Counted from the first letter of the stretch, positions 20,872 through 27,644 are shown. The stretch: DNA of 64,000 bases from Blepharisma stoltei ATCC 30299 (GCA_965603825.1 CBFDEM010000012.1:744001-808000), one strand, 5' to 3'. Numbers and translations are program-made. The notes: a model not told the origin generated them from the sequence alone.

Positions 20872-22923
20872 ATGGAAATTCCAAAAATCTTGGAGAATCT
20901 GAATGATTATCATCAGAACGCCTATGAGAAAAATGAAATACTCAGCTTTGGAGAAGATCTCAAAGCTCTAATCACAGAATCAACTAATGGCCGTCAAGCT
21001 TTCTGCCCAGATATAACAGCCAACAACATGATTAAACGACTAAATAATTTACTCCCAAAGTCATCAGCCAAAGCCTTAAATCTTTTCAATATGCTCGCAA
21101 AGTACTCAAACATCTGCAAAGTCTATGCAAATATCCCACCGACCCTTGTAAGATATGAAGGCAAAATGTATTTATTGCAAACAAAAAAAGATACAAAGAT
21201 AATCCAATCCAAACAATGCACAGAGCATGAATTTTTCAGCCTTCCAAGTATGGGAAATGATAATTATTTCCCTTTATTCTGCTATAAAATATCAGGGAAA
21301 AATCCTGTCACGTTATTTTCAGAAGAAAGTGCTTTGGAGTTATGAAATTCATCGTTTACTGCTGCAATAATTCAGAGCTATGTACAGAATAACGCTAATC
21401 CTATTACAATTATCAGGGTGTTGTGGAGAAAAGGATTTAAAAATAAATATTACACTATTACAAATCGGAAAAAAGTTGTGAAAAAATTACACAAACAGCC
21501 TAGCAATTCTTCTAATCCAACTCATAGACGAGGAGGACTAAGCAAACAATCAACCGATCTAATTAGCCATCAAGCCTCAATATCTCCAACCCCAGAGCCA
21601 GATCCTGATCCGTTTCCTTTGCCTGTACCTCTGAATCGGAATAATCGGCGAAAGCACTTAACAATGTGCCCTTTTGAGTGGCAAGAAGAAGCTATGCATC
21701 ATGACTCTTTGAAATCTCTATTTAAGAATAAAGAAACCGACGGTTACAGCCCAATCACAACGAGAAGCATCCCTCATTGACAAGTCGAATCAAGCGAAGA
21801 ATTTTTTGTGTTGACCCGAAACACCGAAAGCTGCTATGCCTGCAAAAGCTCCACCAGAATAAACGAAATCGAGTTCATGGTAGACCAAATCGTGGATTTC
21901 CTCAATTCTCAAGCATTTCAGCGTAATGAGCTTAAAGGGATTGTGATTGATTTTTTAAAAGACAAAAATAACAGCTGAGTTTTATTAGACAGCCGAGAAC
22001 ACTGCACTGACCAAAACAACGAAAAACTGAAAGAAAAAAAGACCTTATTAAGACTGGAAACACCAAAAAACTCGTTAAATCTACCAAAAATAGAAGTGCA
22101 CCAGCCAAGATGTGAATCGGAAACCAGATTTTTAACACCTACAGCTGAAGAAAATTCCAGATTAGAAGTTGAGCCTGAAACTTGTCCATTTAAAATACGA
22201 TCTAAGCCAAGAAGATTTGAGTCTTCTTCATTGACAGAAAGAGATTTTATGGAAAGGCTGAACAGGATTAATGAAAAAATACACCACCCGACTGAGCTTG
22301 AAACACCTAGGAATCCATTTATATCAGGGAGAGAAGAAGGGATCAGCTATTATGTGAAAAATTTTAATAACCAAAATCCCTCATATAGAGGAACACCAGT
22401 CCCAAATACTTCTCGCATTTTTAGTGAGTCAAGATCATATTTGCACACAGACCAACTGCCAATTGTGGATAGTCAGCTGGTTTATATTAAAAAACATTTC
22501 ACAGAAGTGATTGATCATCTTGAACAAATGAAAACAAATGTGAGAGCAGCCAAAGTTAAGCAGCAAAATATCGTCAAAAAATACGGTGGGGCTGAGTTTT
22601 GGAATAAATTTATTATTTCGTTATATAAAAAAGTGCTGGCATGTGATATTTTAAACAAGCATTTCAAAGACTGCAAAATGGAGAGTTTTGAAAAAATCAT
22701 TATAGGGATGTTTAAGATTATTCAAGGAAATATTAATTTAGATTTAAGAAGAAGACTTAGGGTAGCTCACTATGCGAAAGGGATTAGTGAATTAGAGTTC
22801 AACTGCTATGTTGATATTTTTGAGGACACAATAGTGGATTTCAATATCATTGAAGAAGATAGACAAGGAATTATGTCACAAATAAGATCAATGAAAAGTC
22901 TAATATGTAAGTCAACCCTTTAA
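20872..22923 (+). CDS. ATP-grasp-like domain fused to C-terminal truncated (2/2) globin, paralog 1
   Basis: Single frame across TGA 21343, 21778, 21976; C-terminus KYGG..LYKKV..HF..RLRVAH..GISELEF fits group I truncated hemoglobin; colinear with the neighbouring paralog. Confidence 0.85.
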
Positions 22924-23313
22924 TTTCAGCATGATAAATTAAATTGTATTCATTTTTACTGATTTATTATTATGTCTTATTATTTGTGACATATTATCAG
23001 CAATGGATTTTAGCTGCTCAATGGGAGGATAAAGAATAATGATTAATTTTTTGCAAAAAAGACAGGAGATTTGATATAAATAAAAATTGAATTAAATAAT
23101 TATAAGAGGATATTAGAATTTATTAACCTAATCTGAAAACCCATTTAATTAATAAACTTTAATTTACTTAACCTCCAATCTTCATATCAAAATCTAAATA
23201 AAACCACCTAAGTATTCCATCCCTTATTCTTAGAATTATCTAATATCTAGCTATTATATCTCCTGTTAAATAAAAAACAAAAAATAATTGCATCTCTTCC
23301 ATTTCTTTACTAA

Positions 23314-25305
23314 ATGGATATTCCAAGGATATTAGAACACCTAAACGACTATCATCAAAATCCCAACGACGAAAACGGAATCGACGCTTTCAGTGAAGAA
23401 ATCAAAACTCTACTGGCTGAATCTACCAAAATTTTGGATAGCATTGGCTCCGATATCAGCTGAAACACAATGATAAGCAGAATCAATAATCTTCTACCCA
23501 AGTCTCCTAACCACCAAGAAATAAAATTTTTTAGCCTTCTTGCGACACATGCAAACTCAGCTAAACTAAATATTAATATCCCAACCACCCTTATTAGGCT
23601 GAAATCAGAACCGTCTCCTCTTCTAATTCAAACCAATAAAAAAAATATTGTGGAGATAAGAGAATGTGTGGAAAAAGAATTTTTTGAGCTGGAAAGCACA
23701 AGCAGCAGCCCAGGCTTCCCTTCGTTCTGCTTTAAAAATTTCGCTAAAGAAATCGTAGTTGCGTTTTCAAAAGAAACGGCAGCCAAACTGTGAAATTCTA
23801 GCAACGATGACGCTTTGATGCAATTTTTCATACAAAGTCAAGCAAACCCATCAGCGATTACCAGGGTGTTATGGAAAAAAGGGACAAAAAATAAATATTT
23901 TACTATAATAAATAGAAAAGCAGCCACAAAAAGGCTCATACACAACGCTTCAGGGACTTTGACATCTAAACGAAAAAAGCTTACGACTGGGTTCCGCTAT
24001 TCTCTTGCCTCGTTGCCTAGCCCTTCTCCTACCTACCCATTTAAATCCAAAAAATCTTCCAAAGGTGAAAACCCTTTTGGCTCCCCTTATATGTCCAAAA
24101 ATAAATCCCGCAGGTCCGATATTTTTAAAACCTTTTCCAACGATACAAAATCCGCGACTAATTTTGACAATTTAATTGAGAAAAATATGGTGATTCACGG
24201 GAATAAATGCAAAGAATATTTAGTTATCACAAATGATACAGCCAGCTGCCTGGCTAGCGAAAGTTTTGGGAAAATTGAAGAAATTGATGAAATGGTCAAT
24301 GAGGTGGCTGAGTTTTTGACTTATCATGTATTTAATAGAGAAACAAAAGGACTAGTACTTGACTTTGTGAAGGATATTAATAATAAATGGTTTTTACTTG
24401 ACTGTAAAGAACATCTAATTGACCATTCGAAACATATGGAGAAAAGCAATAAGGTGCATAGCCCGAAATACCCATTGAAACTGACTGATATGGACATTCC
24501 AGGGATGCATAGGACTGATACAGGGAGCATGAGCGAGCTGAACCACCCAATGTCTGCAAGGGCTAAACAAGTTCAAAGGAGGAAAACAGTGGAAAAGCTG
24601 ACCCCGATTAAGAAAAGAAAAGCAACTGTAAAAATGAATGATATTTATGACAGGTTTAACAAAATTAATGAAAAAATAGACCGCTTAAGCTCTCAAAAGA
24701 TTTCTCATTCCTCATTGACAAGGTCAGAAAGCATCCAAAATTACCTTAGTAATTATAATAATTTTCAGCCTCATCTTCCTGACTTAACTCCTACCCATGC
24801 TTCAGTCGCTAAATTTGATAAATGTCCATTTGGAGAGCAAAAGCATGACGAAAGCCCTGTGGTTTTATCTACACGAAAATATTTTTCAGAAGCTGTTGAC
24901 AATTACGAAGAAATGAAAATGAATGTAAATATCGCAAAAACAAAAAAAATAAATTTATTCACAAAATATGGTGGAGAAGCTTTTTGGAGCAAATTTATAG
25001 TTTCTCTCTATAACAAAGTATTGGGCTGTGACGAGCTAAATAAGTATTTTAAAGACTCAAAAATCGAAAGTTTCCAAATGATCGTAAAAGGGATGTTCAA
25101 AATGTTCCATGGAAACCTTAACCTAGAATTACGAGGAAGATTAAGAGCTGCCCATCATGCAAAAGGAATTACAGTTAAAGAATACAATTGTTATGCAGAA
25201 ATGTTTTATTTGACGCTTACTGAGTTTAAGGTAGATGACGAAGATATCCAAGGGATGATGTCCCAAATTAGTATGATGAAAAGCTTGATTTGTAAAGACG
25301 CATAG
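23314..25305 (+). CDS. ATP-grasp-like domain fused to C-terminal truncated (2/2) globin, paralog 2
   Basis: ATG 23314 (MDIPRILEHLNDYHQN vs MEIPKILENLNDYHQN); TGA 23461 and 23791 as Trp; KYGG..LYNKV..YF..RLRAAH..GITVKEY. Confidence 0.85.
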
Positions 25306-25352: not shown

Positions 25353-26387
25353 TTATTTCTTTTTCTTGCCTTTCTTCTTACCTTTTTTCTTCTTTTTCCC
25401 TTTAGTTCTCAGCTTTTTGTTGTCTTTGATAGCTTTTTCAATTGCTTTTAGAGTGTCTCGTGATATTTTTTCTGGCAGCTTAATTTCGTTTATGGCGTAG
25501 ACAATGTCAGCTCCTTCATCATTTTTCTCAGTCAAAAACCCAAGAATAAACTGTGCGCCAGTCTCGTAAAATCCATTATGGGTAAAATCCAAAGTTTTTA
25601 GAGTTTTATTAGTAAAAACCAAATTTCTCAGAGTTGTCAGGACTAATTCTTCTTCTCCAAACTGATTATCAGTCAAATCTACTGACACAACTGAGCTGTT
25701 TATCATTAACCCTCTAAATAAAATAACGACTCCTTGGTTTCTTAAACAATTCCCTTGAAGATTTAGATCTTTAATATTGCATTGCTGATTAATGATGATT
25801 TCCATGATGAATCTTGCGCCTTCTCCTGTTATTCCACAAAACGCGAGGCTTAAGTGAAATAGAGTTTGGTTTAGCCGAAGCCCTTTAGAAAGCAGCTCTA
25901 CCCCTGCATCGCCAAAGTTATTGTAGTCTAGCTTTAAGCTCAATATAAAATTTCTTGAACCGATACCAAAAATTTGGCCTATGAACTCACAGCCTAAAGG
26001 ACTGATTTTACTATTCACAATTTCAATAGTCCTCATTGAGATAGCGTTTATTAAGTACATGGATAGAGACCTTGCACCTTCATCTTCGATTCCAGCATCC
26101 CATAGATGAACTTCTTTTAAGTATTTATAGTCATACTCTCTTAGGGCGTCTGCTAGACATTTCATTCCTTCTGGGCCGATGTTTTCTCATAGGGCAAGCT
26201 CTTCTAGATTTCCTGGGGTTTTTTCATCTCTTAAAATAATGAATTTTTCTATTAGCTTACGAGGCATGGCAAGGCCAGCTGCTTGGAGATTTTTTCTGTA
26301 CAGTCTATATACTTTTTCTGTGGTTTCGTCTTGGAGCATATCTTTTTTGGATCGTCCTCCAGGTTTCCCTGCAGTTTTTGGAGGCAT
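25353..26387 (-). CDS. RNI-like leucine-rich repeat protein with poly-Lys tail
   Basis: ORFs joined across TGA 26189-26187; LxLxxNxxGxxG repeats. Confidence 0.88.
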
Positions 26388-26474: not shown

Positions 26475-27644
26475 TTAAATGAGCTCAGCAATGTCTTTCG
26501 GCATCTCATCAATTTGTGTTGAATAATACTGCTCAATATCTCTCAAAAGTCTCACATCTTCATTTCTTACCAAATTAATCGCAACTCCTTTTCTCCCATA
26601 TCTCCCACTTCTCCCAATTCTATGAATATACAACTCTCTATTCGTTGGAATATCATAATTAATCACAAGTGACACCTGCTGGACATCTAGCCCTCTTCCC
26701 CATATATCAGTTGCAATTAGAACCCTGCTGGTCCCGCTCCTAAAGTCCTCCATAATTGCGTCTCTTTCTTTCTGTGGCATTTCTCCATGCATCATAGCCA
26801 CAGTAAAATTTGCCTCCCTCATCTTCCCAGTCAGCCATTCTACTTTTCTCCTTGTATTTACAAAAATGACGGCTTGTGTAATGACTAGTGTATCATATAA
26901 ATCACAAAGGGTGTCAAATTTCCATTCTTCCTTTTCCACAGCTACAAAAAACTGTTTAATTCCTTCTAAGGAAAGCTCGTCTCTTTTTACTAAAATTTTG
27001 ACAGGATTTTTCATGAAGTTTTCAGTCATGATCAGGATTTCTTTGGGGAGAGTCGCGGAGACAACAATACATTGGGTGTTAAACGGGAGGTAACGGTAGA
27101 TGTCGTAGACTTGGTCTTTAAAGCCTTTGCTGAGCATTTCGTCAGCTTCGTCAAGAATTAGTAGACGGATCGATCGAGTGCGAAGATTTCGACGCTGGAT
27201 CATGTCAAAAACACGTCCAGGAGTGCCAGAAACGATGTGAACACCATGGTCAAGCCTTCTGATATCCTCTGCAAGGGATTTTCCGCCGATACAAGCATGA
27301 ACTTGAACACTCATATAGTCTCCGAGTGCCATAGCCACTCTTTGGCTTTGCTCTGCAAGTTCTCTTGTAGGTGACAGGATCAAGCATTGAGGCTCTCTGA
27401 CTGACAAGTCAAGGCTTTGCAAAGCTGCGACACAGAAAACGCAGGTTTTGCCAGTCCCTGCCTGGCTTTGGACAATTACATCTCTTCCTTCAATAATTGG
27501 CAAAATTGCTCTTTGTTGAACAGCTGATGGTTTTTCAAAGCCATAACTGTAAATTCCTCTTAAAAGGTCTTCTCGAAGGCCAAGCAAGTCAAAAGAAGGC
27601 ACAACCCTGATGTCTTCAGAACTCTCGAAAGTCACTGATTCCAT
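26475..27644 (-). CDS. EIF4A3: DEAD-box helicase eIF4A-III (EJC core)
   Basis: [45 protein letters not shown]. Confidence 0.96.

Follow-up and report, generated by a model that had tools for sequence, protein, structure and literature searches.

The closest described relative of the N-terminal domain considered here is dDC4, an ATP-grasp-like protein of the outer-dynein-arm (ODA) docking complex of trypanosomatids. It binds the DC1/DC2 coiled coil on the doublet microtubules and touches the alpha heavy chain of the ODA; upon loss of dDC4 the cells swim more slowly (PMC7617938). A second group of related systems are chimeric globins. For 2/2 globins, reviews list protein kinase, nitrate reductase and monooxygenase partners, multi-unit globins as well as extensions without an assigned function, and mention T1 chimeras in ciliates (PMC7475203, PMC7082302). 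In globin-coupled sensors (S family), the sensor globin is of the 3/3 type and N-terminal, and the output domain follows at the C-terminus (PMC7475203), and androglobin is a precedent for a chimeric globin tied to cilia or flagella (PMC7475203, PMC11077535, PMC7082302). Here we consider two adjacent genes, denoted A and B, within a stretch of 64,000 nucleotides of Blepharisma stoltei ATCC 30299 (GCA_965603825.1, CBFDEM010000012.1:744001-808000; henceforth the window, with positions counted from its first letter). Their products join an N-terminal ATP-grasp-like domain of the DC4 type to a C-terminal truncated haemoglobin (trHb) of group I. We propose, at about even chances, that in these proteins a degenerate docking domain tethers a 2/2 globin that carries haem, with a ciliary site as the best guess.

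The products of genes A and B are 38% identical. An initial annotation, made from the sequence alone, had described them as collinear paralogues of 683 and 663 amino acids (aa) that are masked by TGA codons read as Trp, and translation returns the same lengths. In the AT-rich window (~34% GC), a list of open reading frames based on the bacterial code contains both genes as fragments only; in-frame TGA codons are located at positions 21343, 21778, and 21976 of gene A and at positions 23461 and 23791 of gene B. The reading of TGA as Trp is backed internally, because in-frame TGA codons fall into invariant Trp columns: codon 369 of A (TGA) aligns with codon 359 of B (TGG) in a column that is Trp in all 29 of 29 paralogues, and codons 158 of A and 160 of B are both TGA, again in an invariant Trp column among the paralogues. 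The proteins of both genes are found in public protein sets, and these database copies (P0013 for A, P0001 for B) served as queries together with pieces of the window. The motifs named in the initial annotation are present in the translations of A and B, respectively, namely NIPPTL/NIPTTL, FPLFCYK/FPSFCFK, IIQSYVQ/LMQFFIQ, and IIRVLW/ITRVLW in the N-terminal part, as well as GIVIDFLKD..WVLLD/GLVLDFVKD..WFLLD, KYGG (both proteins), and LYKKV/LYNKV further on; the [HY]F pattern of Phe CD1 is likewise found in both.

By sequence and by model, the C-terminal domain belongs to the group I 2/2 globins. With the single sequence of B as query (phmmer), the best matches among the sequences of the Protein Data Bank (PDB) are all truncated haemoglobins: cyanoglobin (E = 0.0025), then HbN and the proteins of Chlamydomonas and Tetrahymena. 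A profile built from 11 paralogous globin domains (alignment A3) and run against the PDB sequences detects the Tetrahymena pyriformis trHb 3aq5 (E = 1.2e-7), THB1 (E = 7e-6), GlbN (E = 8e-6), and HbN (E = 3e-5), and all significant matches in PDB sequences are group I trHbs. The Pfam model Bac_globin (PF01152) scores 13.2-13.7 bits with single sequences, below its gathering cut-off of 21. Because the alignment with 3aq5 is ungapped, the residue mapping is direct: Y25 of 3aq5 corresponds to Tyr B10, Q46 (E7) to Phe, and Q50 (E11) to Ile in A and Val in B, and H633 (A) and H614 (B) fall on the proximal His column of 3aq5 and 2ksc. In the AlphaFold2 (AF2) model of the C-terminal half of B (58-sequence alignment) the globin reaches a predicted local distance difference test (pLDDT) score of 92-98. 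A Foldseek search of the PDB with the globin model yields 2/2 globins for all of the top 48 matches, with target-normalized template modelling (TM) scores of 0.74-0.82 to THB1, HbN, and the T. pyriformis trHb. At an overall identity of ~12-20%, no residue of the C-terminal half is better conserved than the proximal His, with 57 of 58 members retaining it; Gly-Gly is found in 49 of 58, Phe CD1 in 46 of 58, and Tyr B10 in 33 of 58 (27 of 29 in the Blepharisma-type subfamily). The profile match to 3aq5, the AF2 model and Foldseek agree with the earlier proposal, in which His F8, Tyr B10, and Phe CD1 mark a 2/2 globin of group I. The domain takes up the last ~135 aa; the codon positions given for the proximal His (22768 in A, 25153 in B) are correct. 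The distal positions are apolar (Phe E7, Val or Ile E11) and not Gln as in the Tetrahymena/Paramecium type, which is a variant within group I and does not disqualify the assignment. From the residues retained across the family we infer that the domain binds haem.

The N-terminal domain adopts an ATP-grasp fold whose nearest relatives are DC4 proteins. No Pfam model matches this domain, either with pieces of the window or with full-length paralogues as queries; weak Pfam matches to DUF4125, HJURP_C, RVP_2, and PHL were dismissed as chance. In the AF2 model of residues 1-372 of B, a core formed by residues 64-200 and 300-370 is predicted at a pLDDT of 80-92, and residues 1-48 and 203-297 are disordered. 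The best Foldseek matches are chains of trypanosomatid doublet microtubules, 9y6s/9e78 chain 5K (E = 2e-8) and 9e5c chain 7c (E = 7e-7); these are followed by synapsin, ATP-grasp ligases of ribosomally synthesized and post-translationally modified peptides (RiPPs), Ddl, RimK, and TTL, with the next family at E = 1e-3. VIA-align, a structure search independent of Foldseek, ranks 9e78_5K (dDC4; Z = 17.1, 214 residues aligned, root-mean-square deviation 3.6) and 9e5c_7c (TbDC65; Z = 15.5, 216 residues aligned) before synapsin (Z = 11.3), DdlA (Z = 10.4), TTLL11/6 (Z = 9.7), and RimK (Z = 9.6). The best 50 rows are all ATP-grasp proteins, the true enzymes among them at Z = 8-10.4. The ESM Atlas agrees with an ATP-grasp fold and adds eukaryotic clusters (ciliates, oomycetes) that rank above the bacterial ligases. 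At the level of sequence, a wide profile of 59 family sequences (alignment A4), run against 177,635 PDB sequences, finds 9e78_5K (labelled 'distal DC4' and 'ODA dDC4') at E = 1.6e-4, TbDC65 at E = 0.037, and TTL next at E = 0.52, which points to a weak but specific homology to DC4. The ATP-grasp fold asserted in the initial annotation hence holds for residues ~64-372; instead of the RimK-type ligases that had been supposed, dDC4/TbDC65 turn out to be closest. An IPK/PIPK-type kinase, suggested by the 'IDF' motif, was likewise rejected as the closest family (ITPK1, Z = 8.4-8.9). We note that a narrow N-domain profile of 10 sequences returned a spurious match to uS4 (E = 0.18) in the PDB, and that the link to dDC4 is seen only with the 59-sequence profile. 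A literature search on TbDC65 found no paper.

The residues of the ligase site are retained to a varying degree. In the alignment with TTL, the segment FGFDF...WLIEVN of TTL lines up with DF..D....W.LL.C of the family; the mapping to enzyme residues follows the order of motifs and one weak hidden Markov model (HMM) alignment, not a residue-level superposition. On this basis, the first Asp of the metal site (D350) is present in 53 of 59 family members and in 28 of 29 Blepharisma-type members. At the position of the catalytic Glu (363), both A and B have Asp, and 22 of 29 Blepharisma-type members have an acidic residue; in the wider family it is populated by Lys (11), Gly (11), Ser (8), and Ala (7). 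The position of the metal-site Asn is occupied by Lys or Arg. The metal-binding Glu-x-Asn triad is therefore incomplete, with a variable Glu and a substituted Asn, and the earlier description of a degenerate ExN and a possible pseudo-ligase is a fair one. The phosphate-binding Lys (K141) is found in 28 of 29 Blepharisma-type members, but the wide family retains it in 33 of 59 sequences only; Q170 (29 of 29 and 55 of 59, respectively) and R184 (29 of 29 and 52 of 59) are more uniform. A Rossmann-like pre-ATP-grasp subdomain is not seen in the model: residues 1-60 are low-confidence helices (pLDDT 32-57), and structural matches start at residue ~62. The best-conserved residues of the domain, namely IPxTL, P136, Q170, R184, W187, the DF motif, and W359, are largely common to DC4. 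Taken together, the unconserved Glu and Asn, the missing pre-ATP-grasp subdomain, and the conservation of residues shared with the structural protein DC4 argue for a docking module, and the N-terminal domain is more likely a degenerate pseudo-ligase of this kind than a gas-regulated enzyme.

The features of both genes are collected in Table 1. The proteins start with a short conserved peptide ahead of the ATP-grasp-fold domain, which carries an insert of ~95-105 aa that differs between paralogues. The low-complexity insert noted before is real, with residues 203-297 of B predicted as disordered (pLDDT 28-45). The C-terminal globin is located behind a largely disordered linker of ~160 aa with three conserved helices; in B these comprise residues ~441-460, 470-483, and a long pre-A helix at ~515-542 (AF2). 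Within the linker, a motif C-P-F-K-I-R-[ST]-K-P-K-K (P0001 residues ~405-460, columns 470-530 of alignment A1) is followed by a conserved helix, E-R-x-N-K-V-N-E-K-I-D-R-[LI], with an AF2 pLDDT of 85-91. This helix could be a coiled-coil or docking element.

Table 1. Coordinates of genes A and B, their domains and the downstream neighbours in the window (nt, nucleotides).
Feature	Position (nt)	Strand	Residues	Remarks
Gene A	20872-22923	+	683 aa	no introns; stop TAA; translated with TGA = Trp; database copy P0013
Gene A, DC4-type ATP-grasp-like domain	21034..22023	+	~55-384	by homology to the modelled domain of B; motifs visible
Gene A, disordered insert	21472-21789	+	about 201-306	splits the ATP-grasp-like domain
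Gene A, pre-A helix and group I 2/2 globin	22513..22920	+		alignment A3 and profile against PDB sequences
Gene A, globin residues	22768-22770 (His F8)	+	Tyr B10 = codon 585; Phe E7 = 606; Ile E11 = 610; His F8 = 633	
Gene A, poly(A) addition site	22958	+		end of a contig of run X1 that continues with 11 A residues not matched by the window; 35 nt past the stop
Gene B	23314-25305	+	663 aa	no introns; stop TAG; translated with TGA = Trp; database copy P0001
Gene B, DC4-type ATP-grasp-like domain	23476..24429	+	55-372	confident core 64-200 and 300-370; AF2, VIA-align, Foldseek, profile A4
Gene B, disordered insert	23920-24204	+	203-297	
Gene B, linker	24430..24897	+	373-528	AF2 model m5b0235274588; motifs in alignment A1
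Gene B, group I 2/2 globin	24898..25302	+	529-663	phmmer, profile, AF2, Foldseek
Gene B, globin residues	25153-25155 (His F8)	+	Y566 = Tyr B10; F579 = Phe CD1; F587 = E7; V591 = E11; H614 = His F8	
Leucine-rich repeat (LRR) protein	25353-26165	-		LRR_6, E = 1e-19
DEAD-box helicase	26475-27644	-		DEAD, E = 5e-46; Helicase_C, E = 2e-35

The locus is covered by contigs of four sequencing runs from one study. The contigs are confined to the gene bodies, with zero coverage at positions 22959-23289. Overlapping transcript-like contigs cover gene A from 20874 to 22958 without joints, and single contigs (23290/23305/23309-25214 and 23327-25295) run along gene B, from the ATP-grasp-like domain through the linker into the globin. 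Since the contigs show no joints, neither gene contains introns, and a split of the transcripts between the two domains, named beforehand as an outcome to check for, is not observed. At positions 21516-21657 and 21997-22113 of gene A each run holds two contig versions, one identical to the window and the other with 5-6 differences, and the assembly breaks; the two versions may be allelic variants or result from cross-mapping of a close paralogue. Contig depth is higher at the two downstream neighbours on the opposite strand, the genes encoding an LRR protein and a DEAD-box helicase, which are unrelated to A and B.

A six-frame search of the B. stoltei genome yields 65 matches, of which at least 55 span nearly the whole protein. 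The tandem pair of the initial annotation is thus present, but it is not isolated and constitutes one of many loci. The closest paralogues of A (C35:111810-113840, 60% identity) and B (C35:109480-111453, 55% identity) are adjacent to each other, and together (C35:109480-113840) form an A-like/B-like pair with the order and orientation of A and B. The pair has therefore been copied as a unit, by segmental or whole-genome duplication. Tandem arrays are found on contigs C22 (~175-212 kb; 175423-212905) and C58 (~651-690 kb; 651542-690220). Both arrays consist of ~15-17 copies on the same strand throughout; in several of their members the match is interrupted by a TAA or TAG or falls into two pieces, and these members may be pseudogenes. 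Three short matches of 107-118 aa in open frames of 121-135 aa comprise the globin only: L018 (C38:533043-533378), which has the motif KYGG, and L019 (C11:16935-17288) and L020 (C18:829315-829635), which have RYG. These are probably stand-alone truncated haemoglobins, perhaps similar to the single-domain protein from which the fused globin arose.

The family extends beyond Blepharisma. When 1.8 billion representatives are searched exhaustively with a profile, 130 proteins are recovered, ~70 of them with a C-terminal globin. The search of protist proteomes for the same architecture, suggested with the initial annotation, hence gives a positive answer: Stentor coeruleus carries the fusion in at least two copies (OMJ80382.1 and SteCoe_23596), and ~40 distant fusion proteins, 20-30% identical, occur in ENA/Logan assemblies. 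One of the distant fusions, P0079 (574 aa, intact in the standard code), is encoded on a gene-dense, eukaryotic contig of 15.2 kb and 48% GC (L021, SRR19603261), with genes for Arf, NAC, Sec6, and a PH-domain protein as neighbours. A DC4-like N-domain without globin is found in other Blepharisma proteins, in a fusion with an EF-hand (P0113, 1006 aa, ENA/Logan), and in a protein of the euglenid Ploeotia vitrea (P0122, 1419 aa), which has no Pfam domain and no useful match in the PDB. With a 34-sequence full-length alignment and the Stentor protein as queries, almost no further members appear among the matches listed. The initial annotation did not recall such a fusion, and in the literature searched we found no paper in which a globin is combined with a DC4 or ATP-grasp domain, although an earlier mention as an 'extended' trHb is possible (Hade et al. 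2017, IUBMB Life); likewise, no paper on Blepharisma globins was found.

A and B are expressed, intron-less members of a large ciliate family, which in the arrangement proposed here would encode chimeric haem proteins. The globin would bind haem and react with O2 or nitric oxide (NO). The ATP-grasp-like domain would be a catalytically degenerate protein-docking module, not a ligase, with nucleotide binding still conceivable, and would tether the haem domain to a fixed cellular site. Going by the nearest relative, DC4, our best guess at present is that this site belongs to a coiled coil or a dynein on the doublet microtubules of cilia. The protein would then supply local O2/NO/redox chemistry or sensing, and the haem would not act as the on/off switch of an enzyme. 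A narrower version, which we regard as quite unlikely, holds that the family consists of ciliary haemoproteins associated with the docking complex, in which a trHb, seated by the DC4-like domain beside the outer dynein arms, reads O2, NO, or redox state or consumes NO/O2 right at the axonemal motor. If so, the paralogues would mark ciliary territories or proximal-distal zones, and heterotrichs would possess a built-in gas/redox input to ciliary beating.

Several points weigh against a tethered haem domain at a ciliary site. A number of at least 55 paralogues far exceeds the need of one stoichiometric axonemal subunit. DC4 itself is devoid of a globin, and its link to the family at the level of sequence is weak (~14-16% identity at the E-value given above). 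The AF2 models were built on family-only alignments, the RNA label of the sequencing runs is a guess, and the contigs indicate presence rather than level, strand, or exact ends. Finally, K141, Q170, R184, and D350 are near-invariant in Blepharisma-type members, in which the Glu position is acidic in the majority stated above, and A and B may, to judge from these residues, bind nucleotides or even act as catalysts.

The latter point leads to the possibility of a globin-coupled sensor, in which the haem, through O2, NO, CO, or its redox state, would control whether the ATP-grasp domain binds or hydrolyses ATP or carries out ligation. The fold is real, the ligase-site residues are conserved in the Blepharisma-type proteins at the counts listed above, and both domains are always part of one polypeptide across a deep divergence. 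Yet Lys or Arg stands in place of the metal-site Asn, and in the wider family the Glu position shows no conservation; the model contains no pre-ATP-grasp subdomain, DC4 as the nearest relative is a docking subunit with a structural role and not an enzyme, and ~160 aa of mostly disordered linker lie between the domains. Furthermore, known globin-coupled sensors possess an N-terminal 3/3 globin (PMC7475203), whereas the globin of A and B is of the 2/2 type and C-terminal. We therefore consider a heme- or gas-regulated nucleotide-binding sensor, as envisaged in the initial annotation, to be unlikely, and less likely than a haem domain tethered by docking.

The proteins could also be soluble haem enzymes, for example NO dioxygenases, nitrite reductases, or peroxide and reactive oxygen species handlers, whose N-terminal domain serves oligomerization or client binding without any link to cilia, and whose number grew as pigmented heterotrichs faced oxidative or photodynamic stress. 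NO dioxygenase activity is established for group I trHbs such as HbN, the family retains Tyr B10 and has a long pre-A helix, and large tandem arrays suit a family that responds to stress or the environment better than one of structural subunits. On the other hand, the closest structural relative is axonemal, the apolar E7/E11 pair is unlike that of well-studied NO dioxygenases, and the distant fusion on a eukaryotic contig of 48% GC indicates that the family is not confined to Blepharisma and Stentor; such an enzyme appears doubtful to us. It is very improbable that the globin-like domain is devoid of haem and acts as a helical structural or interaction module only. The low Pfam score of single sequences and the loss of polar residues at E7 and E11 are compatible with such a module, but the near-complete retention of the proximal His at so low an overall identity, together with the conservation of Phe CD1 and Gly-Gly at the counts given above, is hard to explain without haem. 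We thus retain the tethered haem domain as the preferred reading.

The family would represent a new class of chimeric 2/2 globin, of relevance for haem-based sensing and NO chemistry in protists. Ciliate trHbs are textbook single-domain 2/2 globins; here, globins of this type form the C-terminal part of the members of a large family, both expressed and expanded, without a name and without a Pfam model for the N-terminal domain. The homology of the fusion partner to the recently discovered DC4 is a first indication that the DC4-type domain occurs widely beyond the trypanosomatids, and it yields a concrete, testable hypothesis on where these globins may act. Stentor coeruleus, which is amenable to RNA interference and has few copies, offers a practical test system.

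In comparison with known systems, the family shares with DC4 a variant of the ATP-grasp fold, the motifs IPxT, LQxFIxP...RVxW, and W-LL-C, and an incomplete ligase metal site; it differs in the near-invariant Asp of the DF motif, where DC4 has Tyr. An axonemal location is shown for DC4 and only inferred for the ciliate fusion proteins. The family resembles the synapsin C domain, TTL/TTLL, RimK, and D-Ala-D-Ala ligase in how its central and C-terminal subdomains are folded (Z = 8-11.3) and in the order of motifs, namely the Lys strand, the Gln hinge motif, the Arg strand, and DF...W-L-x. It departs from them in that E-x-N has Lys or Arg in place of Asn and a variable Glu position, and neither a pre-ATP-grasp domain nor a Pfam ATP-grasp match is seen. 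As in globin-coupled sensors, androglobin, and trHb fusions, a globin is joined to a non-globin domain, but the partner is a different one, with no ATP-grasp or DC4 partner in the papers reached, and the globin is both C-terminal and 2/2. The single-domain trHbs of the Paramecium/Tetrahymena type comprise ~116-121 aa with Gln at E7 and E11, whereas the globin described here forms the C-terminal sixth of a protein of ~660-700 aa, with Phe at E7 and Val or Ile at E11; HbN has Leu at E7. The 2/2 fold, KYGG, Tyr B10, Phe CD1, and His F8 are common to the family and to 3aq5, Chlamydomonas THB1, Mycobacterium tuberculosis HbN, and Synechococcus GlbN.

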